The position numbers and the translations under genes are program-made. From the sequence record MF360958.1: DNA of 64,000 nt; one strand, written 5' to 3'. Shown here piece after piece: positions 44,013-64,000 of the stretch. The notes below the pieces were generated by a model. It was not told the DNA's origin. It did no database searches and worked only from the letters and a program-made list of their open reading frames with translations. Each line of letters opens with the position of its first letter. Positions within the stretch are counted from its first letter, which is position 1.

Positions 44013-44033
44013 ATTCACATTGAGGAAAATAAC

Positions 44034-44426: not shown

Positions 44427-44465
44427 TATTGACAAGGAAGTAATATTTTCATATAATATTTATAT

Positions 44466-44672: not shown

Positions 44673-44686
44673 CACCAATATAGTAT

Positions 44687-46555: not shown

Positions 46556-46581
46556 CTTAAACGACAATAGGAGAAGAAACG

Positions 46582-47253: not shown

Positions 47254-47256
47254 TTT

Positions 47257-47282
47257 TAAGGGGCTTAGCAGCCCCTTAAATT
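47257..47282 (+). terminator. intrinsic terminator-like hairpin
   Basis: TTAAGGGGCT-TAGC-AGCCCCTTAA. Confidence 0.65.
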
Positions 47283-47329
47283 GTTATTGATTGTTGTATT
47301 GAAAGTTGTTATAATAGATTTATAAATTA

Positions 47330-48439: not shown

Positions 48440-48534
48440 AAAGTATTTTTTTTTCACCATTTTTAGTATTTTTTTAACACTTGCATAAATATGATTACCG
48501 TGTTACGGTATTAAACACAATGAAGGAATTAACA

Positions 48535-48669
48535 ATGAATAGCAATACTATGAACAACAATGTAAACACTTCAATCAACGAAATGAATATTTCTGTTGAT
48601 CACAATATTGCTATGCATAATGATCATATTAATAATGATATTGATATGTCATGGAGGGTTTTGATCTGA
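48535..48669 (+). CDS. attenuator leader peptide 1 (44 aa; 12 Asn, 6 Ile, 5 Met, 4 Asp, 3 His)
   Basis: MNSNTMNNNVNTSINEMNISVDHNIAMHNDHINNDIDMSWRVLI*, with an AAGGA RBS. Confidence 0.8.
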   Translation: MNSNTMNNNVNTSINEMNISVDHNIAMHNDHINNDIDMSWRVLI

Positions 48670-48729
48670 ATTTTTGGTAAATGCAACCAAGAGTCAATAT
48701 CAAAACCCTTCCAAACGGAAGGGTTTTTT
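48653..48729 (+). promoter_or_regulatory. attenuator 1: antiterminator/terminator switch
   Basis: GGAGGGTTTTGAT (48653-65) pairs with ATCAAAACCCTTC (48699-711), 13 bp, competing with terminator AAAACCCTTCC-AAAC-GGAAGGGTTTTTT (48702-29). Confidence 0.85.
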
Positions 48730-48753
48730 AGTTTATAGAGATTAAAAATTATA

Positions 48754-48831
48754 GGAACTGTAACTCAACTGGTAGAGTACCGGCCTGTCTAGTCGGAAGT
48801 TTTGGGGGTTCGAATCCCCTCAGTTCCGCCA
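48754..48831 (+). tRNA. tRNA-Asp(GUC)
   Basis: GGAACTG/CAGTTCC acceptor, loop CTGTCTA, G73, CCA. Confidence 0.9.
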
Positions 48832-48842
48832 AACAATACAAT

Positions 48843-48918
48843 GGTACTCATAGCTTAGTGACTAAAGCACTCGGTTGTGACCCGAGTAGACGTAGGTTTG
48901 AATCCTACTGAGTACCCC
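48843..48918 (+). tRNA. tRNA-His(GUG)
   Basis: G-1:C73, GTACTCA/TGAGTAC, loop TTGTGAC; CCA incomplete (CCT). Confidence 0.85.
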
Positions 48919-48936
48919 TCTAAATACTTAAAATGT

Positions 48937-49013
48937 GGCAAGGTAGTTCAGTTGGCAAGAACGCATCACTCATAATGATGAGGTCGGGAGTTCAAATCTC
49001 CCCCTTGCCACCA
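48937..49013 (+). tRNA. tRNA-Met/Ile2(CAU)
   Basis: GGCAAGG/CCTTGCC, loop CTCATAA, ACCA. Confidence 0.9.
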
Positions 49014-49063
49014 ACAAACAAAAAAGATATAATATAGTCAATACAAATTGAGGTTGATTAAGT

Positions 49064-49504
49064 ATGAACGATTGGGTGACACATCAAACACATGATGAAC
49101 CAAAAGATCTAGCACCGGATCAAATTATTGAAACAACATGGCCTAAGAATTTTAAGCCAGAATTAAAAGGTGATAATAAAACACAATATATTTCAGTATT
49201 CCGTTTAATTTGGCTTCCGGGTATTGAATATCGTGTTGTAAAAGATAAAGACGGTATTGGTTATTGTAACCATGAAGGTCTTAAACAATCAACACAGTAT
49301 GTTGCAACACAACAATGTGTTATTGGTGGAGAGCGAGCTTTGCAATTTAGTTCAAAGCCCGAATATGTAAAACCGTCATTGATTGCTCCCTATAAATGGG
49401 ACAATGGAGAAAATAACGGGCGCGTTGATGCGCCTCAAAATAAAATCAAACCCGGAGATTGTAAAGATTCAATTCTCCGAGTTTGGTGGAGCGAAGAAGT
49501 TTAA
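49064..49504 (+). CDS. hypothetical protein
   Basis: 146-aa ORF with GAGG RBS inside the tRNA operon. Confidence 0.6.
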   Translation: MNDWVTHQTHDEPKDLAPDQIIETTWPKNFKPELKGDNKTQYISVFRLIWLPGIEYRVVKDKDGIGYCNHEGLKQSTQYVATQQCVIGGERALQFSSKPEYVKPSLIAPYKWDNGENNGRVDAPQNKIKPGDCKDSILRVWWSEEV

Positions 49505-49507
49505 TAC

Positions 49508-49584
<77 letters not shown>

Positions 49585-49607
49585 AATTAAAAATTATAGG
49601 AAAAATT

Positions 49608-49781
49608 ATGGTTTACAATAGAGAACAAGCTTACGAAGAACTTTATGATCCAGATAGTGAACAACGTTCTGATATGGCTCATGAGCTTATTGAGCACATG
49701 GAATCCATCAAGCGAGCATATAGAAGTGGTGATATGGATGAGCTTGAAGACCTCATTGAAGAATGGGGTGGAAATTCTTAA
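49608..49781 (+). CDS. small hypothetical protein (57 aa, not in the ORF track)
   Basis: MVYNREQAYEELYDPDSEQRSDMAHELIEH...WGGNS*, with AGGA RBS. Confidence 0.55.
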   Translation: MVYNREQAYEELYDPDSEQRSDMAHELIEHMESIKRAYRSGDMDELEDLIEEWGGNS

Positions 49782-50005
49782 CGGTTAAACTTATGAAAAT
49801 TAAACATATATGCATTTTTCATAAATGGAAAACATATACAGATCATTTACCAATTGTTTATAAACAATGTAAAAAATGTAATAGGATAAAAATAGTTTCT
49901 ATTACTCCTATGGGACATCGACCATACGATTTAAAAGTACATATAGGAAAATGATCGTTAACTGTTGACAAAGGATAAATAAAACGTTAAGATAATATAA
50001 ACAGT

Positions 50006-50081
50006 TGCAGGGTAGAGCAGTTGGTAGCTCATCGGGTTCATAACCCGAAGGTCGGCGGTTCGAGTCCGCCCCCTGCCTCCA
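50006..50081 (+). tRNA. initiator tRNA-fMet(CAU)
   Basis: 1:72 mismatch, three G-C pairs in the anticodon stem (TCGGG/CCCGA), loop TTCATAA, CCA. Confidence 0.9.
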
Positions 50082-50088
50082 AATTAAA

Positions 50089-50178
50089 GGATGTCGCTGT
50101 AGTGATAGTGTTCCGGGCACATGGGGACGACTACGCCGGTTGTAAGCCGGTCCTCCAAGGAATCCTAGGCATCCACCA
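50089..50178 (+). ncRNA. non-canonical tRNA-like RNA with GUA (Tyr) anticodon-like loop
   Basis: GGATGTC/GGCATCC+ACCA; GCCGG-TTGTAAG-CCGGT; no canonical T-arm. Confidence 0.5.
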
Positions 50179-50188
50179 TTTAAACAAT

Positions 50189-50275
50189 GGTCTGAATAGC
50201 GCGTAAGTCTTGCAATGGGTGATCCTCATTCTAGCGTCGAAAAGGTATCCGGGGAAGGGCCGGAAGGACAAGCCA
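50189..50275 (+). ncRNA. candidate structured RNA ending in GCCA
   Basis: GC-rich island; hairpins AATG...CATT and TCCGG/CCGGA; 3' CCA; sits at tRNA-like spacing in the operon. Confidence 0.4.
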
Positions 50276-50289
50276 AACACTAATAGAGG

Positions 50290-50505
50290 TTGTTTAAAAT
50301 GTCAAAATATTTTATTATTGAAAATAAAGTAAACAATGCATATTTTTCCCACTATAAATTTTCAGATAGTGGTGAAGAAAAAACAGAAGTTTTTGTGAAA
50401 GGTAAAACCCTTGCTCTAAAACTTGAGTATGATAAAGCTCAAAAACTTAGTGAAGAATTAAATCAAGTAGAAAATATTGATACACAGGTTGTGAACGCAC
50501 TTTAG
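50290..50505 (+). CDS. hypothetical protein
   Basis: 71-aa ORF with GAGG RBS. Confidence 0.55.
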   Translation: MFKMSKYFIIENKVNNAYFSHYKFSDSGEEKTEVFVKGKTLALKLEYDKAQKLSEELNQVENIDTQVVNAL

Positions 50506-50514
50506 CTAAGTGTA

Positions 50515-50589
50515 GTCAGCAGCTAGTTTAACTGGGTAGAACGTCCGCCATAGGTGGAAGATACAAGTTCGAATCTTGTACTGTTGACA
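50515..50589 (+). pseudogene. degenerate tRNA (shortened anticodon loop CATAG, no CCA)
   Basis: GTCAGCA/TGTTGAC acceptor, D-arm, TACAAG-TTCGAAT-CTTGTA T-arm; TCCGC/GTGGA stem with a 5-nt loop. Confidence 0.6.
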
Positions 50590-50728
50590 TTTTTAAAAAG
50601 CATAGATGGATCAGGGTTAAAATCCTTGAGTGGTAATGTGAGAAATCACATTCCGGCTGCGGTCGTGAGCCCAATACGCTCATACATTTTTGAAACTGTC
50701 TGTGCTTTTTAATTTTGAAAAGAATAAT

Positions 50729-50850
50729 TGGGTAGTAGCTCAGATGGTAGAAGCAGCGCGCTGTGGGCCTTATGGGTAATATCAGGTTCAACTCCTGAAA
50801 GGCCAAAAGTAACGCGCAGGTCGCAGGTTCGAGCCCTGCCTACCCAGCCA
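50729..50850 (+). tRNA. tRNA-Asn(GUU) with a 45-nt insertion (50765-50809) in the anticodon
   Basis: TGGGTAG/CTACCCA, U1-A72 and G73 (Asn-type), canonical D/T arms and CCA. Removing 50765-50809 gives GCGCG-CTGTTAA-CGCGC. Confidence 0.75.
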
Positions 50851-50853
50851 TAC

Positions 50854-50883
50854 AAAAAGCCACCTACATAGGTGGCTTTTTTA
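50854..50883 (+). terminator. terminator ending tRNA operon 1
   Basis: AAAAAGCCACCT-ACAT-AGGTGGCTTTTTT. Confidence 0.85.
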
Positions 50884-53765
50884 TTGCACACATTAGCCCA
50901 CGCCTGTATAATGTTATCTATGACTCCAAAGAAAAGACAGAGAAATTTACAGTTAGATAAAAGTTTCCGAATTGGGCTAACCGTTCCTTATGATTTCGTT
51001 GTCCAAGTATCATCAGCTCGCCATTATACAATGAAAGAATATTCTGAACTAATACATAATGAAAAACATTATCGAATTCAAAAACATATAGATAGATTAA
51101 AATTTAGATTATACCGTGAATTTAGTTTACTTTTTAAACAATTAAAACTCAATTATTATTGGTATGATGTTGATATTATCTATGGAGATGAAATATCTTC
51201 TATGAATAAATTGACACATCTTACAAATTTTAAATATGATTTTCACTATTTAATTACTTTTAAATTTTCTCAACATGATTTGAATCGTTTAAAATTAGTC
51301 CATCAAGATTTTTATGACGTACTTATTGATGACACTAGGGACGCTATAAAGTTTCAGGATATGTTTGGATATTTGATTAAAAATTAGAGTAAAATTATGA
51401 CAAAGTACAGAAAACATAACCATAACAGACATAATGAATTTAATGTATCAATAACTAATATAGGGTTCAATCAACGTATCGGTTATAATGAAGATGAAGT
51501 GTTTAAAGAAAACTTTTCATTTGGATTAGAATTTGCTAAAAATAAAAACAGAGAAATAGCTGAACGCTGTGAAAGACTTGTAAGATTTCAACTTTATAAA
51601 GAGTTTATCAAACGTTTACAAGACAATAATATTAAAAGGTATTGGTTTGATATTACTTCAAGACATTCATATATGACAACTTATCTTTATATGGATGATA
51701 ATGATTTTGTAACATTAACTATATTTATCACATTTCAGATAACATTAAAAATTAATCAACATGATACTAATCGTTTGAAGTTATCTGATCCTGAATTTTA
51801 TGATTTGTTATGGGAACAGAACAGAATTCGTAATACAATAACACAAGAGTATCCTTCTTTAGACGTTCTTATAGAAAATAGAAAAACAAAATCATGACCA
51901 ATAAAAGAAGAAACAGATTATATTTTGAAAATGAATTCAACATTTCTCTTTATCAATTGTATGATGTTGTACAGATTGATTCTAAAAAGAGTTATAAAAG
52001 TATAAAAGACATTAGACATCATAATGATAAAATTCTTTATGATGTGTTAAACGATGTAAAGAAAAATTTATATCGTAAAATGATTAAACGATTTAAAGAA
52101 TCTGGTTTAAAACATTATTGGATTGATATAACTATGAATGCCAGTGATCAAGGTATTCATGAAGAATTACAAACAAAGAACAAACATCACCAACAAGAAA
52201 TGCATATAGTAACGTTTGATTTTTTTTATATTATTCATTTTAGAATTTCTCAACAAGATATTAATCGGTTAAAAATAACAGATGAAGAATTTTTTGATAT
52301 GTTAAATGATGAAAATGTAGATTTGTTTGAAAAAATATTCTGTTACACTATATCTAATTGATAAGTGAATTTTTATGACTGAAAAAAGAAGAGTAAACGT
52401 TTTATATAATAAATCGCATCGTATTGATATTGACCCAATTGGTTTTTATATTTTTACGGATCATCTCAACGATGACTGCTTAACATATAGTGGTGTCAAA
52501 CAATATAATGATAATCTTCTTGATCGTGTCTATAAAAATGTGAAGCGAGTATGTTACCGATATTTTATTACTAAGTTTAGAGAGAATAATATAAAAACAT
52601 ATTGGATGAATGTAAGTATTAGTATTGTTTATAATGATGTTGAACGAGATAGTTATAACAGAAGTGGTATGTATCCATATATATTAGAAGCTCAAATATA
52701 TATTTTCACAACACAACATGATTTTAATCGTTTAAAATTAACGGACTATTCATTATGTAATATTCTTAACAATTTAGATACGGCTGAACTTAATGATAAA
52801 AGTATAGAATCAATAAAAATCGAGTTATAAACTATGACACATCAAAGAAAAACTGATCCTAATTTATCCAAAGAGTTTCTAATTAGACCATTACCGCTTA
52901 TATTTTATTACTATTATGCTGATAATAGTGTAGTAAATTATGAAAACTTAAAAGATGACATATTCAATACTGAGCGTATGGTTAAAAGAAAATGCTATCG
53001 ATATTTCATTTATAAATTTAAAGAAAATGGAATAAAATCATATTGGATGAATGTAAGTATTAATTCAACATGTCATAATCTTTCCAGTGATTTTATAGAT
53101 TCAATAGTAGATATTGGTACAATAAGTACAATAAGTGAGCGTAAAGGTATTATCTATGATTGCGAGTTAAACATCAGAATAACTGTTTTATTCTCACAAC
53201 ATGGACTTAATCGTTTAAAAATATGCAATAACCAGCTTCATGACATCATCAATAACAAACATAATTCTCATATTAATAAACTACTTAACGAATGGTTTAC
53301 AATAAGTAAGAGTCAATTATGACTGAGCACAGAAAGAATAATCTTCAGAAAACTAATAATTATAACTTGGAATTCTTAATAGTAGAAGATATTGTATTTT
53401 ATAATGAATCAAGATTATATTGGGGAGAAGATTATGAAAAAGTTGTTCAATCAAATAAGGATATGTTTGAGTCAATTGATCAACGTGTTAAAAACACAGT
53501 TTACAAACAGATAGGTAAATTATTTTTCAATAATATTAGAAAAAGCAATTATTGGTTTTATGTTTCGTTAGAGATTATAAAAGGTCCGTTATCAAATATA
53601 TATGATAATAATCCTAATATAATAGTACGATGTTATTTAGCATTTACAGTATATTTATACATTTCAGATCATGGTATGAAAAAATTAAAACTTATAGATC
53701 AAATTATAGGTAATATCATTGAAGATGAAAATGGTGATAGACTTGAATATATTTTAGGTTTTTAG
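50872..53765 (+). CDS. tandem array of six paralogous ~150-170-aa proteins (50872, 51397, 51894, 52375, 52834, 53319)
   Basis: All have an MTxxR(K/R) start (first member likely at 50920) and share K.(L/C)YR.F...F, YW.(D/N)(I/V) and a C-terminal (S/T/N)(Q/D)(H/Q)(D/G).(N/K)(R/K)LK(L/I). Confidence 0.8.
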
Positions 53766-53901
53766 TATTGTATTAGTAACTATAATCAAATGGTTATTAT
53801 ATGACAATTAATAGAAAAACGTTTCATGTTTATAAACTAAGTTCACCTTATGAATATGAAAACAATTATTTAAGAATTTTCTAATACTACGATAGATACA
53901 T

Positions 53902-55452
53902 ATGACATATGAATTTTGGAAACGTGTAAGAGATTACGCACAACGTAAAATGAAACAAGAATATGGCCATGGTGATCTAAAATGTCCCAACTGTAAACGT
54001 TGGACTTATGAACTTGGTGGTTGCGTAACGATGTATCAATATGATAAACATAATGATATAATGGTTTGTAAACAATGTGGTTATGAAAGTATGTGGTTTA
54101 TGGGAGCAGCAGTACCCATATCTAACAACAATTATGAGTATCCTACTAAAGATACCGATCCTCATTAAAACTGGATGGATAAATTATGAAACTACTAGAT
54201 AAAATGAAAAACATTTTAAAAATTCATGATAGAAAATATGACTACTATGTTCATTGTCCATGTTGCCATCGTATCGAATCTTCCAAATCTATTATGATTA
54301 AAAATGTTGCACGATGCTCCAACTGTGGTGCATTTTTTGATATACATTTTGCTAAAAGATTCATTAAAGATGACTATGGTGATATGACCGATGCTCGCAA
54401 AAGGGTATTAGAAAGAAAAAGAAATTTGAAAAAGAATTGGGGTCATGGTCATAATGTTAGAAAATGAAAGAATGAAACATACCCATAATAGTATTACTAA
54501 AATGCATACAACTTTATGCTTGATGCATTCAGAGATATTAGAGTATGATCATTATGATCATTATGATATAGTTACTATATTTACAGATCAAAAACAAATC
54601 TCTAAACAATCTGAAATTTTAGATGAATGTTTAGAATCATTTTTCAGAACAAACTATATTATTTCAATTATGGATACTAAATCAGAAACATTATTCCATA
54701 ATGAAATTCCTGAAACGTTCAGTGATATTAGTTTAATATACAACGAACCAATAACTATATACATTGCAGATATCTTTCCTGATAAAAAGACTTTTCATTT
54801 GTATAAATTACAGAATTATGAGATATTTGAAAAGCGATACAAACGTTATTTTAACTAATTGGATCTAATGACTTACTAGAAATTTGAATAAAATATATGC
54901 TTAAATCTAACTGTCCTATAGAAAATATCAATACTAGTACCCAAGTAAGTATTTCATTAATATATATTAATGAAATATTAAATTTTAAATATCATTGGAC
55001 CTATATTTTAAACGTATTTAAAGATGACACTTTTATATCAGAACAATCTCGAATAATAGATGAATGTTGTGGATTGGCAAAAATTAAACGATTTGATACT
55101 TAATAATTATTATTCTTGACAATAGTGTTAACAATCTTTATAATTGTCTATAGAATTTATTAAAAGAGGTTGTAAAATGCTTGGTAAATATTCACCTACT
55201 ATTTCAGGATGGTATAGCAAAGATCAAAATTGGTTTGAAAAGAATGGTGGTGGTTTTGATAATGGTTATAATCCAAACAGCGATCTAGACAATGATGGCT
55301 ATGACAGCTATGGTTACACAAGCTCAGATTCTTTTGAAGATTATGATCGTGAAGGATTTTACGAAAGAGATTATTGGTCCAATAAAGGTGAAGAACGTTA
55401 CGAACAAATTGAAAGAATCTGGTGGCGTAAGCCTTTGCCTTATGAAAAATAA
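53902..55452 (+). CDS. five small hypothetical proteins (53902 and 54186 zinc-ribbon, 54445, 54897, 55144)
   Basis: CPNC/CKQC and CPCC/CSNC motifs in the first two. Confidence 0.5.
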
Positions 55453-55467
55453 CTTTTCAAAAAGGTA

Positions 55468-55596
55468 TTGACAGAAAGACTATAAATAACTATACTGGAA
55501 CACAGTTAAACAAATTAAACCAAAAACTTGATCTGTATTCGCCACAAGCGAATACTACCGCAAGGTACGATGGAGAGTGGTTCACATCGACTTTTT
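55468..55596 (+). ncRNA. promoter plus candidate three-hairpin sRNA
   Basis: TTGACA-N17-TATACT (55468-96) with embedded TATAAATA; hairpins GTATTCGC/GCGAATAC, TACC-GCAA-GGTA and CGATG/CATCG, then a T-tract. Confidence 0.55.
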
Positions 55597-55693
55597 AAAA
55601 ATTTACGGTTTTTAAAGTATTTTTTGAAAACTGTATAAATAAAATCAACAAGTCATTATTGACAAAAAACAATTAACGATTAGAATAATTATT

Positions 55694-55825
55694 ATGATTA
55701 ACGCAAGTACTACAAACATCGCTAAAAGTATGATCGGTAAAGCTGCCAAAGTTAGCTTCAAAGGTGGCTTTGTGTGGGCGTTTAGCTTTAAAAAAGCGAG
55801 CGGACAGCGAGGGTTTTTGGAATAG
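55694..55825 (+). CDS. attenuator leader peptide 2 (43 aa; 6 Lys, 6 Ala, 5 Ser-AGY, 5 Gly, 5 Phe, 2 Val, 1 Trp); not in the ORF track
   Basis: MINASTTNIAKSMIGKAAKVSFKGGFVWAFSFKKASGQRGFLE*; ATG lies 7 nt after the -10 of TTGACA-N16-TAGAAT (55659-86). Confidence 0.8.
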   Translation: MINASTTNIAKSMIGKAAKVSFKGGFVWAFSFKKASGQRGFLE

Positions 55826-55890
55826 TGAATGAAGTGTAAACCAGCATTCAAAATAATTCCAGAAACCCTTCCAAGTCGGAAGGGTTTTTT
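55809..55890 (+). promoter_or_regulatory. attenuator 2: antiterminator/terminator switch
   Basis: GAGGGTTTTTGGAAT (55809-23) pairs with ATTCCAGAAACCCTT (55856-70), competing with AAACCCTTCC-AAGTC-GGAAGGGTTTTTT (55863-90). Confidence 0.85.
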
Positions 55891-55922
55891 AGTTTAGGAA
55901 TAATAAAATTTAGAGAATATTT

Positions 55923-55998
55923 GGGGATATAACTCAACTAGTAGAGTACATGGCTTTTAACCATGCTGTTCAGGGTGCAAGTCCTTGTATCCCCACCA
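55923..55998 (+). tRNA. tRNA-Lys(UUU)
   Basis: GGGGATA/TATCCCC, loop CTTTTAA, ACCA. Confidence 0.9.
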
Positions 55999-56004
55999 AA
56001 TTTA

Positions 56005-56083
56005 GGAAGGATAGCTCTAATTTGCGTAGAGCAGAGGATTGAAAATTCTCGTGTTGGGAGTTCGAATCTCTCTCTCCTTCCAC
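56005..56083 (+). tRNA. tRNA-Phe(GAA)
   Basis: GGAAGGA/TCCTTCC, loop TTGAAAA, ACCA. Confidence 0.9.
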
Positions 56084-56263
56084 CAAATTTAAAAGGATTA
56101 AAAATATGAGTAATAAAGAAAATATCGCATATAGTGTAGAAAATGAAGGTCTGAAAAGAAGATGAAAAATGGGATAATGGTGAGCTAAGAAATGATGAAC
56201 GCTTTGTGAAAGTTGCTGATAAACAAACCGAAGAAGCTCTTGAACAAGCATTGAAAAAATAAA

Positions 56264-56340
56264 GCCGGATTAGCTTAATTGGTAAAGCGGCGGACTCCAA
56301 ACCCGCGTCTAACGTGGTTCGAAACCATGATCCGGTGCCA
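56264..56340 (+). tRNA. tRNA-Trp(CCA)
   Basis: GCCGGAT/ATCCGGT, loop CTCCAAA, G73, CCA. Confidence 0.9.
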
Positions 56341-56361
56341 AATTTATAAAGGTGATTAACA

Positions 56362-56679
56362 TTGAAACGACTTTATCATATGTATCGAAATTTAAATTCA
56401 AAGTGTTGATCCGTTAAACATAGAGGAAAAGTTATAGGTCATCATGATTCTATTGTTTTGAAAAATTGCGAATTTAGAGTTAGTGAAAAAGGTCGTCAAA
56501 GAGTTTTAAAAGAAAAAGTTAAAAATGTTCATGCTTATATTGCAGCACAAACACATGAAGAATTAGATGATGCCATTGATAAATGTAACAAAGTAGAGCT
56601 TACTTATAATCCATATAAATATTCAACATTTGTGATTAAGGAAACAGGAGAACCAATTTATCATTGTGATCCATATTAG
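56362..56679 (+). pseudogene. phage hypothetical gene with in-frame TGA (56407-09)
   Basis: KRLYHMYRNLNSKC*SVKHRGKVIGH...CEFRVSEKGRQRVLKEKVKNVHAYI; same frame on both sides of the TGA. Confidence 0.6.
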
Positions 56680-56751
56680 CTAAAGATGATGGTAAAATCT
56701 ATAAAATTCGTTATTGACATAAAACAAATTATTTATTATAATATTTAAATA

Positions 56752-58422
56752 GTGATCAAGAGGAATTTAGTAATGTATAAAATTATGACCAAAGACGAAC
56801 GTTATGTGATTATTGTGGAAGAAAAAAGTGCAGTAAATGAATACTATGTTTTTGAGACTCAAGATCTCATCGTAGAAGACAATATGGAAAAAGAAGCATC
56901 AGATTTTTATAATAAAATGCTGAAAGAAGATCAGAAACCATCTATTTATATGAGTGTTAAATGGGATGGTTGTGCAAATATGGATGCGAAAGAAGATAAT
57001 GTGTTGATTCATTTTTGTGAACAATCGCATATCGATTCATTTTATGGTATGCTGTCAACATGTTACAAAGATGCTGAAAAGCGTTTTGATTTTAACAATA
57101 TGTTCAACTAATAGTGGAGTAAATAGTGATGAAAGTTAAAGCGATTGATACAGAAACAAATCGTAGTGATCGTCCCGGAAAGCCTGATGGTATTACGGAA
57201 GGACACGTTTACGAAGTTGTTCAAATCAAATCTTTTTTCCATAATAATCGTAAGATGCAGATGGATCAGTACCGGATTTATAATGATTATGGAAAACTGA
57301 CTAATCATTCACAATACCGTTTTGAAGTTGTTGATGATTCAAAACCTGAACCGTTGGTTAAGTCTTTCAACAGGCTTACTAGTGATGTAAGGGTTGAAAA
57401 TCGAGAACTCAAAGAGAAAAATGAAAAGCTGGAAAATTTGGTTGAGTACTATAGAAAACTTTTAAGTGTTGAATAAAAAGGTTGATTTTTAATAGTAATT
57501 ATTGTTATAATAAACATTGTTGAGATATAGGAGATTTAGTATGAATATGAATGGTCTATTTAAATTGGTTGCTATTACAATGACTTTCGTATTTGTAGTT
57601 GGTTGTAAGTATGATGCTCATGCCTTTTCGGCTGAAGTTATTGAAATTGGTGATTGTGTGTATGATGGCCCTTATACATGTCGGGTTAAAGTCAAGCATG
57701 AACAAACGAAACTTGATGATGAACATAAGACAGACGATGACATTATGTATGTTGAAGTTTGGGGTACGGTCATGAAAGGGCAAACCATCTATCGTCTGTG
57801 CTGGTTTGAATCATCTGAAAAAGAAAAAAGAATGTGTTTTGTTCCATTCAGAACATCCGTACCAAATGGTTATGAACTTCGCGATTAGGAGATTTAAAAT
57901 GAGTAATAAATCGAAATATATTGAAGATCTTGAAAGCATTCGTGATCAACTTCGTCAAGAGCGTGAAGAACATTTTAAAAACATGTCTGATCCACGTAAA
58001 GGAAAAGATAAAGAATGGACTGAAGTTGAAAAGTCCAATCAACGTTATCATGATGCTGTAGAACAATCATATGCAGAGTATTATAAAAGATATGGCGATC
58101 CTGATAACGAACAACGGTAAAATATAAGATAATTAAAGGTGGTTAGCTCAGTTGGGAGAGCGCTGGTTTTACATACCGGAGGCCACAGGTTCAAACCCTG
58201 TACCACCTACCAGTATATGTATGAAAAATAATGATTGATCTTATTAAAAGCTTAATCAAAGATTGGAAGAATAAAAGATTGTATAGTGATCCAAGAAAAC
58301 TTCACTATGCACAGTTAAGAGAACATAATAAAGAAAGGGGTGTTGAGCATCCTTGTGATTGGGACTATACTGTTCCATCATTAGATGATATGATTAGAGA
58401 GTATCGTGACAAAGGTTATTAA
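56752..58422 (+). CDS. hypothetical proteins interleaved with tRNAs (56752, 57126, 57517, ~57900..58120, 58231)
   Basis: ORF track with GGAG RBSs. Confidence 0.55.
58137..58212 (+). tRNA. tRNA-Val(UAC)
   Basis: AGGTGGT/ACCACCT, loop TTTACAT, ACCA. Confidence 0.9.
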
Positions 58423-58558
58423 AGATTATGTTTAATACGAAAATAAAAGAAAATTTTTCATTTGCTTTTCTTTGCACGGTATTGATTATTTTTATAGGTT
58501 TTCCTTAACAGCATATGGTTTATGTTTTCTTTATTAGGAATTAAACAAAACAATTTTT

Positions 58559-58650
58559 AGTGGGGTGGTCGAGCGGTCTAAGACGCTGGATTGCTAATCC
58601 AGTGATCCGTTGTTACGGGTCCGAGGGTTCGAATCCCTCTCCCACTGCCA
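58559..58650 (+). tRNA. tRNA-Ser(GCU)
   Basis: AGTGGGG/TCCCACT, loop TTGCTAA, long variable arm, GCCA. Confidence 0.9.
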
Positions 58651-59174
58651 GTTTAAAATTAAGGCAAAATAGTATGGAACAGCGTTTTAAAAGTTTTGGG
58701 TACAAATTAAAAATAAAACTTAAACAATATCGTTGTAAAACATTATTGGGAACAGAGTTTTCCAGACAATAATCGAGATTTTTACTGTGTTAAATGTGGT
58801 AAAGATTATTGTTTACCTTTTTAAAAATTAAGTAAAGACAAACTAATATATGTTTAAAAATCAAAATATTATATTTCAAACAAAAAATAATATTTCTGTT
58901 AAAGAAATAAAAGAGATATTAAATACGTTTCGAAACGAAAATAAAACTTCATTAGTAATGGAGTATAAATATAAAAATCTTATATGGTATGTAAATATAA
59001 CCGGAAATTTTGAAAAGAAATCTTATAATGACTTTATATCAAATTTAGAAAATGTTACAGAAACTATTCTAAAAATTAATTAAAGCTTTAATAGCGGCTC
59101 ATGATGGTCTTTGGTTTCGCCCGGTATCCATTTCCCACGCCCCTATTACAGTCAGGGACCGGGTGTAAACAATA

Positions 59175-59260
59175 TGGCTCAGTGGCGATGCAGTTGTATC
59201 CTTAATGCGCGAAGGGTATGATCAAGTGGTTGAGGGTTCGATTCCTTCCTGAGCCTTCCA
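59175..59260 (+). ncRNA. aberrant tRNA-like RNA (UGC in an 8-nt loop; Ala-like?)
   Basis: GGCTCAG/CTGAGCC acceptor, GAGGG-TTCGATT-CCTTC T-arm, CCA; long central stem TATCCTT/AAGGGTA with loop AATGCGCG; no G3:U70. Confidence 0.5.
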
Positions 59261-59266
59261 AACAAT

Positions 59267-59342
59267 GCGGGATTGGTGTTTAATGGTAGCATGTCGGACT
59301 TCCAATTCGAAGGTCGGGGTTCGAACCCCCGATCCCGCACCA
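59267..59342 (+). tRNA. tRNA-Gly(UCC)
   Basis: GCGGGAT/ATCCCGC, loop CTTCCAA, ACCA. Confidence 0.9.
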
Positions 59343-59397
59343 GATTATAAATACGAATGTAAATAAAAAAATTAATAATGAAAATTTAGGCCATGTA

Positions 59398-59958
59398 ATG
59401 TTTGAAGAAAAAGTGTTACTTTTGGATAAAACAGGATTTCCTAATCGTTGGATCATGCCGGATGATGCGGCAGTAATTATAACCAATGGTCGGGTTGCAT
59501 GGTCTTTTGGTGATACTCTTACAACTCTCCATGGTGGCTATAATCGTATAAGCTACACTCAATCCACTCTTGATATTCCAAGCGTTATCGCTCTGGATGG
59601 AGTTATGAAAATGCGAGGTAAGTGTCCTCCATTAAGTAATGATTCTTTATTTTTGAGGGATCAGCACCTATGCTTATATTGTGGTAAAGGATTTACTAAA
59701 AGTAAATTAACACGTGACCATATTTTCCCTCAATCTCGTGGTGGTAAATCTACTTGGGACAATTTGGCGACTGCATGTTTCCGTTGCAACAATCATAAGA
59801 AAAACAATTGCACACCTGAAGAAGCAGGTATGGAATTGATTGCTTTGCCGTATAAACCTAATATTGCAGAATACCTTATCCTTAAAGCACAAGGTAGGAT
59901 TCTCGAAGATCAAATGAACTTTTTAAAAGGTCATGTAAGCAATTTAATATTGGATTAA
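59398..59958 (+). CDS. HNH endonuclease (McrA-like)
   Basis: RDQHLCLYCG...LTRDHIFPQSRGGKSTWDNLATACFRCNNHKK. Confidence 0.9.
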   Translation: MFEEKVLLLDKTGFPNRWIMPDDAAVIITNGRVAWSFGDTLTTLHGGYNRISYTQSTLDIPSVIALDGVMKMRGKCPPLSNDSLFLRDQHLCLYCGKGFTKSKLTRDHIFPQSRGGKSTWDNLATACFRCNNHKKNNCTPEEAGMELIALPYKPNIAEYLILKAQGRILEDQMNFLKGHVSNLILD

Positions 59959-59962
59959 AATT

Positions 59963-60671
59963 ATGAGTCATAAAGAAATCAAAATTTGTTTTATAGTATT
60001 ATGCATACTGGTTTTGATGTGGGGTGGTGGAATGATATTAACAGCGTTTCATTTCTCTACATTTTATTCTGGATTACTAATCATATTTTCAGTTTTTGGT
60101 ATGTGGACATTGGGTGAATATACCTATCGTAGAGTAAGGATTAGGAATAGAAATGATTAAACAACGTAAACATAATTATGTTCATAGTATTCTCAATCAT
60201 GATGAAATTTATAGTATCATTGATCATATTGAAAACATGAATTATAAGACAGAAGAACAAGCATTGTGTTATATTCATGATCAGGTTAAAAAGAACTATC
60301 TTTCTAAGAAGAAATTTAAGTTGTTACTCACGTGGCATTTTGAAAATTAATTTTCAATTTTTATAAATAGTATTAAGAAAATTAATTGAATAATATGGAG
60401 TTAAAAAATAATGACTATTAGAAAACATTTGGATATGATCAATAATATCGAGTCCGAACAACTTAATGAATCTTTCAATAAAGGCGATACTGTTAAAGTA
60501 AAAGATGATGTTAAAAATCCTCAGATCAAAAAGTTTGCAGGAAAACAGGCAAAGGTTCTTAGTACTGAAGATGATGGTAAAACCATTCATGCAAAGGTTA
60601 AAGGTGCTAAACATGGTTCTATGGAATTTAAATCCAGCGAACTAGAAAAATTTGACGAAGAAAATTCTTGA
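59963..60671 (+). CDS. three small hypothetical proteins (59963 membrane, 60153, 60411 late SH3/KOW-like)
   Basis: ORF track; TATAAATA upstream of 60411. Confidence 0.5.
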
Positions 60672-60740
60672 CAATTGAGCATTTTTTCAGTAACATTATA
60701 AATAACATAAACAAAGCAATTAAACATTAAGGTAATTATT

Positions 60741-60854
60741 ATGAACGCTCTAACACGTACATTCACATTAACAATCACAACACGCTCGTCAGAGCGCACG
60801 AGTGAAGTACGCTCCACTGAACGCGAAACAGTAGGAGAACGGAAGGGTGTTTGA
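60741..60854 (+). CDS. attenuator leader peptide 3 (37 aa; 9 Thr, 6 Arg-CGN, 5 Glu, 4 Ser); not in the ORF track
   Basis: MNALTRTFTLTITTRSSERTSEVRSTERETVGERKGV*; AAGG RBS; promoter TTGACA-N17-TAACAT (60668-96) followed by TATAAATA. Confidence 0.85.
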   Translation: MNALTRTFTLTITTRSSERTSEVRSTERETVGERKGV

Positions 60855-60912
60855 ATAATTCAAATATAAGAATGTTCAACAATAAAAACCCTTCCAAATG
60901 GAAGGGTTTTTT
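60841..60912 (+). promoter_or_regulatory. attenuator 3: antiterminator/terminator switch
   Basis: GGAAGGGTGTTT (60841-52) pairs with AAAAACCCTTCC (60884-95), competing with AAAACCCTTCC-AAAT-GGAAGGGTTTTTT. Confidence 0.85.
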
Positions 60913-60935
60913 AGTTTGTGGTTTTAGAAAATTTA

Positions 60936-61026
60936 GGAGAGTTGGCAGAGCGGACGATTGCAGCGGTCTTGAAAACCGCCGAGGGTTTGCAGCCCTCCGT
61001 GGGTTCGAATCCCACACTCTCCGCCA
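60936..61026 (+). tRNA. tRNA-Ser(UGA)
   Basis: GGAGAGT/ACTCTCC, loop CTTGAAA, long variable arm, GCCA. Confidence 0.95.
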
Positions 61027-61033
61027 GAACATT

Positions 61034-61108
61034 GTCCTGTTCGTCTAATGGTTAGGACTCTACCCTTTCACGGTAGCAACAGGGGTTCGAATCCCCTACG
61101 GGACGCCA
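61034..61108 (+). tRNA. tRNA-Glu(UUC)
   Basis: GTCCTGT/ACGGGAC, loop CTTTCAC, GCCA. Confidence 0.95.
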
Positions 61109-61115
61109 ATACAAT

Positions 61116-61187
61116 GCCTCGGTAGTTTAATCGGTAAAACAAATGACTTGTAATCATTAGTCGGTGGATCGTAACCGCCCCGAGGCT
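61116..61187 (+). tRNA. tRNA-Thr(UGU), no encoded CCA
   Basis: GCCTCGG/CCGAGGC, loop CTTGTAA, variant T-loop ATCGTAA. Confidence 0.8.
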
Positions 61188-61219
61188 AGAATATTATAAT
61201 CATAAATACCTTAAAATTA

Positions 61220-61921
61220 ATGAGGTATTTTATGATTAAAAATTATACAAAAAAAGAATTAGAATCAATATTATTAAAATATGGCATGGATAATAATACT
61301 TTTATTGTGAAAAGGGAATTTCCTAATCATATAGATTATATACCATCATATAATTCATGTTGGAGAAATGGAGTAGAAATTAGAAAAGTTAATAAAATTA
61401 TAGATTATAAATTTTACAAAACAAGTCCAAATAAATGTACTAATTGTAGAAAAAATTTAATTTATAAGAAAAGATATAATAAATTTTGTAATAGGTATTG
61501 TTGGATTATATATAATGCTAGATATAATTGTGGTAAAAATTGTTTAAATTGTTCTAAAAGATTTACATCGAAAAGTTCTAATTCAAAATATTGTTCTATT
61601 GAATGTTCAGCAGAGAAAAGATATAAAGATACTATTAATAAATGGTTAAATGGTGAATTAAAGGGGCATACTGGTAAAGCTCTGCAAATTAAACAATTTG
61701 TGAGAAAATATTTATATCAAATAAGAGGAACAAAATGTAGTGAATGTGGATGGGATGAAAAGCATCCAAGAGATAATAGACCTTTAACACAATTTCATCA
61801 TATTGATGGGGATGCATCTAATACAACACCATCAAATCTTAAAATATTATGTCCTAATTGTCATTCAAAAACTGATAGTTATCTTTCAAGAAATAAAAAC
61901 AGTTGTCGTGATAGAAAATAG
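61220..61921 (+). CDS. HNH homing endonuclease (likely start 61232)
   Basis: CxxC repeats (CTNC, FCNRYC, CLNC, YCSIEC) and RGTKCSECG...QFHHIDGD..N....NLKILCPNCHSKT; late CATAAATA upstream. Confidence 0.9.
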   Translation: MRYFMIKNYTKKELESILLKYGMDNNTFIVKREFPNHIDYIPSYNSCWRNGVEIRKVNKIIDYKFYKTSPNKCTNCRKNLIYKKRYNKFCNRYCWIIYNARYNCGKNCLNCSKRFTSKSSNSKYCSIECSAEKRYKDTINKWLNGELKGHTGKALQIKQFVRKYLYQIRGTKCSECGWDEKHPRDNRPLTQFHHIDGDASNTTPSNLKILCPNCHSKTDSYLSRNKNSCRDRK

Positions 61922-61923
61922 TT

Positions 61924-61957
61924 TTAGTCGGCGGATCGAAACCGCCCCGAGGCTCCA
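61924..61957 (+). repeat. duplicated 3' half of tRNA-Thr, with CCA
   Basis: TTAGTCGGCGGATCGAAACCGCCCCGAGGCTCCA versus 61157-87 TTAGTCGGTGGATCGTAACCGCCCCGAGGCT (31 bp, 2 mismatches). Confidence 0.9.
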
Positions 61958-61963
61958 AATAAT

Positions 61964-62012
61964 TCCCCGGTAGCTCAATTGAATAGAGCAACGGTCTACG
62001 AAATCGTAGGTT
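61964..62012 (+). pseudogene. 3'-truncated tRNA-Arg(ACG)
   Basis: TCCCCGG, D-arm, ACGGT-CTACGAA-ATCGT, AGGTT, then AT-rich sequence; no T-arm or acceptor 3' strand seen. Confidence 0.75.
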
Positions 62013-62041
62013 ATATTACCAACAAAATAATAAATATTATT

Positions 62042-63004
62042 ATGAAATACTATACTGTTTATAAAATAAAAAATAAAATCAATGATAAAATTTATATAGG
62101 TTGTCATAAGACTGAAAATCTCGATGATAACTATATGGGATCTGGTATATATTTACGAAGGGCCATAGACAAATATGGTATAGATAATTTTGAAAAACGC
62201 ATTATGTTTGTATATGACAATCCATATGATATGTTTTCAAAGGAGGCAGAAATAGTTACCGAGAGCTTTGTAGAAAGAAAAGATAATTATAATTTAAAAA
62301 TTGGAGGCATGGGTGGATTTGATTATATAAACAGAAATAAATTAGGATTAATTGGATTTTGGAATTATTGGAATAATTTAACCAGTGAACAATTAGAACG
62401 ACATATTCAATTATCAAGACAGGGAGGATTTAAAACATTAAAAGATAGAACAGGCTTGTTTTCAAAAAAATCTATTGAAAATAGAATTTCATCTATTAGA
62501 AAAAATAATGAAAATTGGACTTTTGGCGGAATGAAGCATTCCAAAAAAAGTAAAGAAAAAATGTCTAATAGTGCTAAAAAACGTTTGAAAGATCCTATGA
62601 AACATTCTCAATATGGCACTATGTGGATCTATTCATTAGATGAAAAACGTGCTAAAAAAATAAAAAGAACAGATAATATACCTAATAATTGTATTGTCGG
62701 ACGTAAACCTAAAAAACAAAATAACCATAATAAAAATCCTAAATGTAAAACATGTAGTAATACAACTAGCACATTTAGATCGAGGTATTGTGAAAATTGT
62801 AAAAAACTTAGAAATTATCAAAGAAAAGGATATAATAAAATAGATTTTATATCTAGAAAGCATAATATAATTGAAGGAAGTGTATCAAAAAATAAAGATT
62901 TTATTAAAGAATGTATTTCTAACAATATTCCAAAAAATAATATTTTAAAATTTTTAAATTGTAATAATTCAGGAGGAAATTATAATATTATTAAAAATTT
63001 ATAA
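62042..63004 (+). CDS. GIY-YIG homing endonuclease (Seg-like) with NUMOD3-like motif
   Basis: YTVYKIKNKINDKIYIGCHKTENLDDNYMGSG; MKHSKKSKEKMS; TAAATA upstream. Confidence 0.9.
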   Translation: MKYYTVYKIKNKINDKIYIGCHKTENLDDNYMGSGIYLRRAIDKYGIDNFEKRIMFVYDNPYDMFSKEAEIVTESFVERKDNYNLKIGGMGGFDYINRNKLGLIGFWNYWNNLTSEQLERHIQLSRQGGFKTLKDRTGLFSKKSIENRISSIRKNNENWTFGGMKHSKKSKEKMSNSAKKRLKDPMKHSQYGTMWIYSLDEKRAKKIKRTDNIPNNCIVGRKPKKQNNHNKNPKCKTCSNTTSTFRSRYCENCKKLRNYQRKGYNKIDFISRKHNIIEGSVSKNKDFIKECISNNIPKNNILKFLNCNNSGGNYNIIKNL

Positions 63005-63040
63005 TTTAATATAAAAACCACGATAATTAAATTATAAATA

Positions 63041-63603
63041 TTAACAAAGTTTATCTTTGATTGATTTAATACAAAGAAGTTCTATCTTAGCTTTACTAAT
63101 GCGTACACATTTTTCATAAATTTCTTCTTCGGTTAAACTATAACCTGAAGTTAAATTTTCCGGTTCTAAATCTTTTTCAATCAATTCAGAAAGTTTATCG
63201 CATTCTTCCTTGTTAGGAATATATGAAAATTCTGGCTCATCAAGAAGATCTCTCGCAATGTTCTTCTTAGTAATATATCGTTCAAGATATGTCATACAAA
63301 TTTCCTTAGCCTTTTAATGAAAAATTTATTGAAATATGAAATCTATTTTGCTATAATATAATTATTGTTAAGGAGGTATAGAAAATGTCTGTTGTAAAAG
63401 TACGTAATACTCAAAAATTTCAAAGATGGTTTAAGAAAAACACACCTACTGCCTCAAAAATTATCAATTATGATTACAAAAATAACATTCAGTATGTTAT
63501 CATTGACCTGAATTATTATGGAACAAGCATGGGAAATGAAATTGAAGCTTCTAAAAAAATTAGAACAATTGTTTCTGATTTTAAAGGTAAAAAAGTAAAA
63601 TAA
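63041..63603. CDS. two hypothetical proteins (63041..63295 -, 63385..63603 +)
   Basis: ORF track with RBSs. Confidence 0.5.
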
Positions 63604-63631
63604 CATTTAATTATTAATCAAGGGGTTAAAT

Positions 63632-64000
63632 ATGTCATATCTTATTATTACTAGTATGTTGTGTCTTATTGTTAGTAATATCTTGCTGATTATAGCGATT
63701 ATTAGATTAAATGATAATAAAAAGAATGTGGATACTTTTACTTTTACACATACTTGTACACAACATCCCGTAATAGTTACGGATAAAGATGGAAATGTAT
63801 ATTTCGAAAAACATAATAATACAATAACTAAAGTTGATCCAGATGGATACGAAATTTGGTCTTATGATGGACACACAAATAGAGTTCGAAACATAGAGAT
63901 AGATCAATTCGGTAATGTGTATAGTGTGAGTGATGATGAAACTATTCGTAAAGTAGATTCATGTGGAAATGAACTATGGACCTATATAGTGAGAAATATC
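63632..64000 (+). CDS. membrane-anchored beta-propeller (WD40/PQQ-like) protein, 3'-partial
   Basis: MSYLIITSMLCLIVSNILLIIAII..., then repeats DKDGNVY...KVDPDGYEIWSYDGHTNRV..IEIDQFGNVYSVSDDETIRKVDSCGNELWTY. Confidence 0.7.
   Translation, partial: MSYLIITSMLCLIVSNILLIIAIIRLNDNKKNVDTFTFTHTCTQHPVIVTDKDGNVYFEKHNNTITKVDPDGYEIWSYDGHTNRVRNIEIDQFGNVYSVSDDETIRKVDSCGNELWTYIVRNI

Follow-up and report, generated by a model that had tools for sequence, protein, structure and literature searches.

The 64,000-nucleotide (nt) stretch analysed here, called the window below, is identical to record positions 248001-312000 of Salicola jumbo phage SCTP-2 (MF360958.1), a phage of solar saltern origin with a genome of 440,001 bp and 30.0% GC. 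We examined a short open reading frame (ORF) on its plus strand, at 60741-60854, which GenBank lists as gp364, "hypothetical protein", and which stands immediately before a cluster of transfer RNA (tRNA) genes. The record carries no tRNA annotations in the window or in the other stretches of the genome that were inspected. The ORF, hereafter leader 3, encodes a peptide of 37 amino acids (aa), MNALTRTFTLTITTRSSERTSEVRSTERETVGERKGV, followed by a stop codon. A Shine-Dalgarno-like TAAGGT (60728-60733, plus strand), read from the sequence, lies 8 nt upstream of the ATG. Further upstream, a sigma-70-like promoter site of the form TTGACA-17 nt-TAACAT (60668-60696, plus strand) matches the consensus and would give a 5' untranslated region (UTR) of about 38 nt.

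The remaining parts of this element, element 3, follow on the same strand. The codons R-K-G-V at the end of leader 3, together with its stop codon TGA, form region 2 (CGGAAGGGTGTTTGA, 60840-60854), the predicted 5' strand of an antiterminator. A small hairpin (60851-60879) sits inside the antiterminator helix and has an equivalent in all five elements compared here, namely the four elements of SCTP-2 and element L034 from a 201-kb phage contig of IMG/VR. Region 3 (ATAAAAACCCTTCC, 60882-60895) has two possible partners, region 2 in the antiterminator and region 4 in the terminator. The intrinsic terminator (AAAAACCCTTCC AAAT GGAAGGGTTTTT T AGTTT, 60884-60917) consists of a 12-bp stem, a 4-nt loop and a T6 tract; in a scan of 17 kb it was one of the two top-ranking terminator-like sites. 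It starts 29 nt past the leader 3 stop codon and ends 19 nt before tRNA-Ser. There is no room for a promoter in this interval, so that the tRNA genes can be transcribed only by read-through of the terminator.

ARAGORN and Rfam identify three intact genes on the plus strand behind element 3: tRNA-Ser(tga) at 60936-61026, tRNA-Glu(ttc) at 61034-61108 and tRNA-Thr(tgt) at 61116-61187. The original prediction had named a Ser(UGA)-Glu-Thr-Arg(ACG) cluster. This is right for the first three genes, whereas tRNA-Arg(ACG) is a truncated remnant of about 48 nt (61965 to about 62012, plus strand), comprising only the 5' acceptor strand, D arm and anticodon arm (ACGGT-CTACGAA-ATCGT); neither program calls a tRNA there. 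A homing-endonuclease ORF follows at 62042-63004 on the plus strand (phrog_314, E=3e-54; no Pfam match at E<=1e-3). Since the T arm and 3' acceptor strand are found neither after 63004 nor anywhere else in the SCTP-2 genome, the tRNA-Arg(ACG) gene has evidently been destroyed by insertion of the homing endonuclease. We also considered an intact gene with an intron carrying the endonuclease; the same lack of a 3' exon, after 63004 and genome-wide, rules it out. Between tRNA-Thr and the remnant lies an HNH endonuclease gene (61232-61921; phrog_1271, E=4e-33), followed at 61923-61956 by an orphan copy of the tRNA-Thr 3' half (29/31 identical). It appears that an endonuclease cassette was inserted into the tRNA-Thr gene, carrying along a replacement 3' half.

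Next, we compared the codons of leader 3 with this cluster. Threonine, arginine, serine and glutamate make up 24 of its 37 residues, exactly the count first claimed, and the individual tallies also stand on recounting. There are nine Thr codons (seven ACA, one ACG, one ACT), six Arg codons (four CGC, one CGT, one CGG, no AGA or AGG), five Glu codons (four GAA, one GAG) and four Ser codons, three of them TCN (TCG, TCA, TCC) and one AGT. CGC is scarce in SCTP-2 (2.9 per 1000 codons), yet occurs four times here. Codons after the start were scored with strict wobble decoding, under which the anticodons of cluster 3 cannot read CGG, AGT, ACT or TCC, and the background was taken from 111,817 codons in ORFs of at least 150 aa of the entire SCTP-2 genome. 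By this measure 20 of 36 codons are cognate, against 5.2 expected (binomial P=9.4e-9). When compared with all 2459 ATG-initiated ORFs of 20-60 aa in the genome, a set that includes leader 3, only one reaches the same fraction, presumably leader 3 itself. Even when Arg is not counted, 15 of 36 codons are cognate (P=9e-6). The same DNA read in frames +1 and +2 contains 6 and 9 cognate codons. The match had been described as holding codon by codon; it does so mainly at the level of amino acids, the synonymous-codon component being weaker (15/19 versus 9.6 expected, P=0.009). Eighteen of the 20 cognate codons are located at codons 5-29, upstream of the antiterminator-forming strand.

Element 3 has counterparts. 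The terminator core CCTTCC-loop-GGAAGG occurs in exactly four copies in the 440,001-bp genome, all of them on the plus strand, 19-32 nt upstream of the first tRNA of a cluster, and each preceded by a short ORF whose 3' end pairs with the terminator 5' arm. Element 1 (48535-48733, plus strand) comprises leader ORF 48535-48669 (MNSNTMNNNVNTSINEMNISVDHNIAMHNDHINNDIDMSWRVLI), antiterminator strand UGGAGGGUUUUGAUCUGAA and a terminator at 48702-48727; behind it lie tRNAs Asp, His, Met, Ile, Met and Asn (48754-50850, plus strand). Element 2 (55659-55894, plus strand), with a putative promoter TTGACA-16-TAGAAT at 55659-55686, an ORF at 55694-55825 (MINASTTNIAKSMIGKAAKVSFKGGFVWAFSFKKASGQRGFLE) and a terminator at 55862-55888, precedes tRNAs Lys, Phe and Trp (55923-56340, plus strand). 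Element 4 is outside the window. Its leader ORF (record positions 316197-316283, or 4197-4283 of the locus labelled L038; plus strand) is the only one of the four that GenBank does not list as a coding sequence, and the cluster behind it contains Leu(tag), Pro(tgg), Leu(gag), Tyr(gta) and Gln(ttg). Its peptide is MRTNTTVNQYQLQQLPLVLYPYNGGKGC, in which Leu, Pro, Tyr and Gln account for 13 of the 14 residues within QYQLQQLPLVLYPY. Leader 4 is an independent test of the codon-match rule, and the rule passed it. No leader of this kind precedes the remaining SCTP-2 tRNAs (Val, Ser-gct, Gly, Cys, Met, Leu-caa, Leu-taa).

Leader 1 supplied a second prediction. It contains 12 Asn codons (eight AAT, four AAC), while no tRNA-Asn had initially been called behind it. 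From this excess a tRNA-Asn was predicted and then found at 50729-50850: ARAGORN calls tRNA-Asn(gtt) there once insertions are allowed, with a 45-nt insert in the anticodon loop, and Rfam scores it as tRNA with 46 bits. Elements 3 and 4, in turn, tell something about origin. Their promoter and 5'UTR sequences (L038:4121-4196 in element 4) are identical at 73 of 76 positions and their pre-tRNA spacers are similar; the leader ORFs are unrelated (53/99 in a forced alignment). Judged from these sequences, the two look like a duplicated cassette in which the ORF has been rewritten to fit the downstream tRNAs.

We then tested all four leaders against their clusters. Cognate codons number 29 of 43 in leader 1 (27% expected, P=3.8e-8, matched by 0 of the 2459 short ORFs), 12 of 42 in leader 2 (13%, P=7.5e-3, 175 of 2459), 20 of 36 in leader 3 (14%, one of 2459) and 12 of 27 in leader 4 (14%, P=1.2e-4, 20 of 2459); Fisher combination over the four gives P=7e-18. 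In the matrix of four leaders by four clusters, enrichment is present only on the diagonal, all 12 wrong pairings falling below expectation. Among the 24 permutations the true assignment scores highest, with a summed excess of 1.27 versus 0.60 for the runner-up. The signal is confined to the reading frame, the in-frame counts of 29, 12, 20 and 12 contrasting with 4-9 in other frames. No tRNA of any cluster is without a codon in the respective leader; random ORFs would achieve this with probabilities of 0.30, 0.27, 0.17 and 0.013, jointly about 2e-4. Choice among synonymous codons points the same way in places: all six Ile codons of leader 1 are ATY, and all four Leu codons of leader 4 are CTN, though TTR accounts for 50% of Leu codons, the Leu(taa) and Leu(caa) genes being 85 kb away. 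Leader 3 had been singled out as the cleanest match, which is justified by its lowest P and by 56% cognate codons against 14% expected; in raw fraction it is surpassed by leader 1 (67%), and its antiterminator is the weakest.

The RNA of element 3 can adopt two alternative structures. Full-length leader 3 RNA folds with -60 kcal/mol (z=-6.9 versus shuffles) and forms the terminator. If the RNA ends before the terminator 3' arm, GGAAGGGU (60841-60848, encoding R-K-G) pairs instead with ACCCUUCC (60888-60895), enclosing the small hairpin. The proposal that the RKGV codons act as the antiterminator strand is borne out by RNAduplex, in which CGGAAGGGUGUUUGA (60840-60854) pairs with AUAAAAACCCUUCC (60882-60895), the terminator 5' arm, at -14.4 kcal/mol, a value equalled by 1 of 500 shuffles. 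Across the five elements these 2:3 duplexes range from -14.4 to -22.2 kcal/mol, and 0-1 of 500 shuffles equal them. The strand facing the terminator 5' arm is always made up of the final 4-6 codons and the stop codon, which is inside the helix in all five. Moreover, the helices reach past the copy of the terminator 3' arm by pairs specific to the element: GAU/AUC and UGA/UCA in element 1, UUGGAAU/AUUCCAG in element 2, GUUGA/UUCAA in element 4. MAFFT aligned the five elements out of register, and in place of counting covariation a matrix of own versus cross duplexes was used. Own pairings average -19.0 kcal/mol versus -15.1 for cross pairings, and the true assignment ranks second of 120.

To follow the effect of a translating ribosome, we folded the RNAs with a 30-nt footprint masked. 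Full-length leaders 1, 2 and L034 form the antiterminator when the A site is upstream and the terminator when it is in the last approximately nine codons. In leaders 3 and 4 the nascent RNA, extending to the 5' arm, behaves likewise: the antiterminator forms when the ribosome is early (A-site codons 2-29 in leader 3) and is impossible afterwards. Leader 3 is thus equipped with a start codon and ribosome-binding site, cognate-codon enrichment and an intrinsic terminator, as expected for a leader-peptide attenuator, and in silico also with a mutually exclusive antiterminator dependent on ribosome position.

Where else do such elements occur? A scan of IMG/VR for the exact terminator pattern returned 35 loci, among which L034 is the sole relative. 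It is located on a 201-kb contig (UViG_3300033146_004404) and is clearly homologous, sharing the TAAGGT-ATG spacing and the inner hairpin. Its leader, MIKNFTKQTAINMTPEQNFDYRAMRKGEL, ends in MRKGEL and a stop codon over AGGAAGGGUGAAUUGUAA, and its terminator reads ACCCUUCC-loop-GGAAGGGU8. Shine-Dalgarno motifs are correctly spaced in L034 as in leaders 1, 3 and 4. Upstream lies an RtcB gene; downstream lie an HNH gene and a tRNA array of Gln, Asp, Glu, Thr, Phe, Ala, Met, an amber suppressor, Met and Met. In the ORFs tested, the contig shows no protein similarity to SCTP-2.

Other searches added no homolog. The element as blastn query hit only SCTP-2 itself among 50,697 GenBank phage records, and two further IMG/VR pattern scans yielded nothing new. 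Terminator scanning of metagenomes gave at least 120 loci, all unrelated among the matches listed, including two bacterial tRNA-His leaders without an ORF. Of the 47 matches to the pattern in bacterial genomes, none is beside a tRNA. With the RtcB of L034 as probe, 80 loci were found, the element being present only on its own contig. No relatives of gp355 were found in IMG/VR, and SCTP-2 and XacN1 tRNAs as blastn probes did not locate the relatives' tRNA regions. When we looked for a terminator plus short ORF before the 140 tRNAs of all compared loci, the SCTP-2 elements were the only candidates; the remaining two matches, the bacterial tRNA-His leaders at L140 and L154, have a terminator and no ORF.

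A jumbo-phage clade that includes SCTP-2 and, as distant members, Atu_ph07 and XacN1 has been described (PMC5852040), and the latter two were examined for analogues. In front of the largest tRNA cluster of Agrobacterium phage Atu_ph07 (Ala, Arg-acg, Phe, Pro, Ile, Tyr, Trp, Met, Glu) stands a 42-aa ORF, MTNPMQPTTEIIAIERNVFVRAEAAMFWYPISGSDSHTGDKR, with codons for all nine tRNAs. Codons 31-35 of this ORF (UUCCGGUUCCG) pair with the 5' arm of a canonical terminator at -18.8 kcal/mol. Xanthomonas phage XacN1 has two mini-ORFs that start 5-6 nt after a promoter-like aCTAAATAg motif. One, MNKPYYKRYYAKA, precedes Lys, Lys and Tyr (7/12 cognate, P=7e-6). The other, MNAIHIDNRADRFISIIADDSVSARVDSFSVVAVDSSNKQE, precedes Phe, Asp and Ile (13/40, P=4e-3), and when the next cluster (Ala, Val, His, Ser-gct) is added it scores 25/40 (P=4e-6). 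The tRNA region of phage T5 contains no short ORF with terminator immediately before a composition-matched tRNA cluster.

Two side observations belong to these phages. The aCTAAATAg motif recurs in the XacN1 locus L254 at 29931, 30416, 39031, 42342, 45061, 45733 and 46091, stands about 15 nt before several XacN1 tRNA genes and resembles the T4 late promoter TATAAATA; judging by its sequence and placement, it is probably an XacN1 promoter for tRNA transcription. In T5, the 42-aa ORF T5.070 (L253 7628-7756, minus strand), with six Cys in a CxxC...CxxC arrangement, lies immediately upstream of tRNA-Cys and is most simply explained as a zinc-ribbon mini-protein, though its location is curious given the SCTP-2 leaders.

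Taking these data together, we consider it likely, on the strength of the sequence comparisons, that 60741-60854 encodes the leader peptide of a ribosome-mediated transcription attenuator which gates read-through from an early-type promoter into tRNA-Ser(UGA)-Glu-Thr(-Arg). What the sequence itself shows is the set of parts and their restriction to these sites, along with the codon match and the alternative pairings. From these we infer that the leader is translated, that it is coupled to RNA polymerase, and in which direction and how strongly the switch responds; the circuit would work as follows. During smooth translation the ribosome would reach the stop codon and cover the antiterminator strand; the terminator would then form and transcription would stop. 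Should a charged cognate tRNA be scarce, the ribosome would stall within codons 5-29 of leader 3, at a Thr, Arg, Ser or Glu codon, leaving region 2 free to capture the terminator 5' arm before the 3' arm is made. With the antiterminator formed, RNA polymerase would continue into the tRNA genes. As read-through would yield exactly the tRNAs that the stalled ribosome lacks, each cluster would be under codon-specific negative feedback. Scarcity could arise from a 30% GC phage using codons rare in its host, or from tRNA degradation during infection.

Several observations weigh against this interpretation, and part of them concern the RNA switch. At equilibrium, full-length leaders 3 and 4 form the terminator for any ribosome position, and leader 3, which has the weakest antiterminator of all five (-14.4 kcal/mol), has a more stable terminator (-17.0). 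In these two leaders the switch must therefore be kinetic. Leaders 1, 2 and L034 possess no 1:2 anti-antiterminator helix; as nothing would sequester their antiterminator strand, they would read through if left untranslated. The putative promoters, that of element 3 included, are consensus matches only.

Other discordant points concern the codon match and the relatives. Leader 3 retains five CGY codons though tRNA-Arg(ACG) is defective; its Arg codons may record the earlier tRNA content of the cluster. The enrichment of leader 2 is modest, it contains six Ala codons (3.3% expected, P=0.0025) while SCTP-2 has no tRNA-Ala gene, and it lacks a Shine-Dalgarno site, the -10 hexamer ending 7 nt before the ATG, so that it may be leaderless. 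All five of its Ser codons are AGY, fitting tRNA-Ser(gct) 2.7 kb downstream. If the downstream Val(tac), Ser(gct) and Gly(tcc) are added, an extension chosen post hoc, leader 2 reaches 20/42 (P=6e-5), and since no plus-strand terminator is predicted between 56340 and 60884, a transcription unit of this length is possible. Leader 2 may thus sense a longer unit or record a lost tRNA-Ala. Among the relatives, the L034 leader, whose composition is spread over many amino acids, has about 14 of 28 cognate residues by hand count versus about 35% expected, which is not significant; the Atu_ph07 match (20/41, P=0.04) is weak alone; and both XacN1 mini-ORFs lack U-tract terminators.

This last point leads to the rival that survives best, although we regard it as unlikely. 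In it the leader is translated, and the ribosome acts on something other than termination: on processing or stability of the tRNA precursor, for instance by exposing an RNase E or RNase P site, or by protection from Rho. The codon-matched mini-ORFs of XacN1 are followed by hairpins without U tracts, one of their stop codons falls within a hairpin abutting tRNA-Phe, and the thermodynamic dominance of the terminator in leaders 3 and 4 would also suit such an output. Nevertheless, the hairpins of SCTP-2, L034 and Atu_ph07 are canonical intrinsic terminators, with GC-rich stem and T6-8 tract, and the alternative pairing is aimed precisely at the terminator 5' arm.

It is also rather improbable, to a slightly greater degree, that the leader RNA acts untranslated, by binding tRNAs in the manner of a T-box, or a protein, or Rho at a rut-like tract in leaders 3 and 4. 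Pairing of cognate triplets with anticodons is conceivable in principle, leaders 3 and 4 have 5' halves that by eye are CA-rich and G-poor, and the missing Shine-Dalgarno site of leader 2 fits this reading as well. But leader 1 is not C-rich, and the cognate triplets keep to a single frame bounded by ATG and stop, with Shine-Dalgarno motifs at the correct distance in leaders 1, 3, 4 and L034. The stop codon inside the antiterminator helix of all five elements is a placement meaningful only to a ribosome. Neither a T-box nor another riboswitch was matched in Rfam at E<=1; for the T-box the search covered 44000-64000 and L038:4000-5800.

Coincidence would require that the small ORFs are chance or unrelated ones, that the hairpins terminate upstream genes and that tRNAs come from leaky, unregulated read-through. 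Short ORFs are indeed plentiful at 30% GC, 7% of the 2459 match the enrichment of leader 2, and the promoter scan, with 124 calls versus 99.5 expected from shuffles, is not above shuffle level. Still, it is very improbable that chance should enrich four of four elements for their own cluster and deplete them for the other three, in one reading frame only, fulfil two predictions (element 4 and tRNA-Asn), and place the terminator motif nowhere else in 440 kb. Complementarity between ORF end and terminator arm, moreover, exceeds the shared repeat and differs for each element. Least credible of all are functional micro-proteins whose composition is set by peptide function and whose position before tRNAs is historical: three of the four leader ORFs are coding sequences in GenBank, and the Cys-rich, zinc-ribbon-like T5 ORF before tRNA-Cys illustrates a structural cause of composition, but the four peptides share no sequence beyond the nucleotides of the RNA helix, leaders 3 and 4 combine near-identical flanks with unrelated ORFs, and composition follows the downstream tRNAs, not any fold.

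If ribosome-mediated attenuation is accepted for SCTP-2, a broader proposition can be put forward more tentatively, with slightly less than even odds: large phages run a codon-resolved homeostat of their own tRNA supply. The leader would list the tRNAs of its cluster, the host ribosome would serve as sensor and the antiterminator/terminator pair as actuator, a block of tRNA genes being transcribed only when decoding falters. The cause could be either a mismatch in codon usage between phage and host or the cutting of tRNAs by anticodon nucleases of the host. The arrangement would recur with unrelated sequences across the clade of Rak2-like phages, SCTP-2, Atu_ph07 and XacN1 and in at least one unrelated 200-kb phage, and leaders would keep a record of lost tRNA genes (Arg in leader 3, perhaps Ala in leader 2).

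The closest known architecture is that of the multivalent attenuators of enterobacteria, thrL (Thr and Ile) and ilvL of ilvGMEDA (Leu, Val, Ile), along with hisL, pheL, leuL and trpL. Common to both are a short codon-rich leader ORF, exclusive antiterminator and terminator, the decision by ribosome position and, in the multivalent cases, several amino acids per leader. Enterobacterial leaders, however, control biosynthetic enzymes, whereas those of SCTP-2 are phage-encoded and precede tRNA genes; they would sense the supply of particular tRNA species, with the product feeding back directly. Each would sense 4-6 amino acids, mirroring a tRNA set, unlike the enterobacterial leaders. Elements of the SCTP-2 type also differ in having the stop codon inside the antiterminator strand and, in three of five, in lacking the 1:2 anti-antiterminator helix. 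Rfam registers a sub-threshold similarity to Thr_leader (33.4 bits, element 4) and Phe_leader (29.6-31.8 bits, elements 1, 3 and 4); the gathering thresholds of 50-55 bits for Thr_leader RF00506, Phe_leader RF01859 and Leu_leader RF00512 are not reached.

Coupling of decoding or tRNA state to gene expression is familiar from aminoacyl-tRNA synthetase genes, in the pheST attenuator with its pheM leader and in T-boxes. The T-box riboswitch binds uncharged tRNA directly, without a ribosome, by means of a specifier loop and the T-box motif. pheM controls a synthetase gene and the SCTP-2 leaders precede tRNAs, but in both cases attenuation would feed the translation apparatus. In Mycobacterium tuberculosis, Cys-rich small ORFs reportedly respond to the VapC4 tRNase, in work ascribed to Barth et al. 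2021. The idea is the same, stalling on a codon-enriched small ORF reporting tRNA loss and switching downstream genes; there the output is host stress genes, while in SCTP-2 it would be the missing tRNA itself, encoded by a phage.

The regulation of phage tRNA genes and the reason for carrying such genes at all are long-standing questions. The tRNA clusters of T4 and T5 resemble those of SCTP-2 in being arrays interspersed with small ORFs and homing endonucleases, with early promoters according to the T5 annotation. Bacterial tRNA genes are regulated at their promoters, by growth-rate and stringent control, and we know of none under leader-peptide control. Leader-peptide attenuation of tRNA genes, phage or cellular, was not described in the full-text literature searched, a coverage that left most subscription journals outside, so that an older precedent is possible. 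The putative SCTP-2 switches would accordingly represent known ribosome-mediated attenuation with new tRNA targets, a new logic of direct tRNA-supply feedback and a phage origin.

Were this true, a virus would gauge, for each codon, how well the infected cell can decode it and would replenish only the shortfall, and the ideas of "codon compensation" and "escape from tRNA-targeting defence" would be joined in one circuit. A practical annotation rule also emerges: where a short ORF and a terminator stand before a tRNA array, the composition of the leader predicts the tRNA set. Here it exposed the missed tRNA-Asn and the decayed tRNA-Arg. The leaders, being natural and compact, could further be built into synthetic sensors of tRNA availability.

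Finally, some minor observations were made in and around the tRNA clusters. The 45-nt insert of tRNA-Asn(gtt) is hairpin-forming, and a second tRNA-like gene, at L038:5318-5472 (record position about 317.3 kb), carries one of about 74 nt. Neither insert seems long enough for a group I intron; an unusual route of tRNA splicing or repair is conceivable, given the two RNA ligases of SCTP-2 (gp50, gp464). Amber-suppressor tRNAs with anticodon CTA occur within the tRNA arrays of the 201-kb phage (12872-12946 of the contig, L173) and of XacN1 (L254 36047-36205), which hints at stop-codon reassignment or read-through in these two phages. Two degenerate tRNA-like sequences of the window, a "Tyr(ata)" with C at position 33 (50517-50588, Rfam tRNA 40 bits) and a weak "Arg(gcg)" (59176-59256, 26 bits), may be decayed tRNAs or tRNA-like RNAs. 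Directly after tRNA-Met(cat), a GC-rich, structured-looking stretch of about 200 nt (50082-50290) has no Rfam match and may, by analogy with the "stable RNAs of unknown function" of the T5 tRNA region, be a stable RNA. At 55468-55600, just upstream of element 2, about 100 nt of GC-richer, ORF-free sequence come after a near-consensus promoter (TTGACA-17-TATACT) and may be a small RNA.

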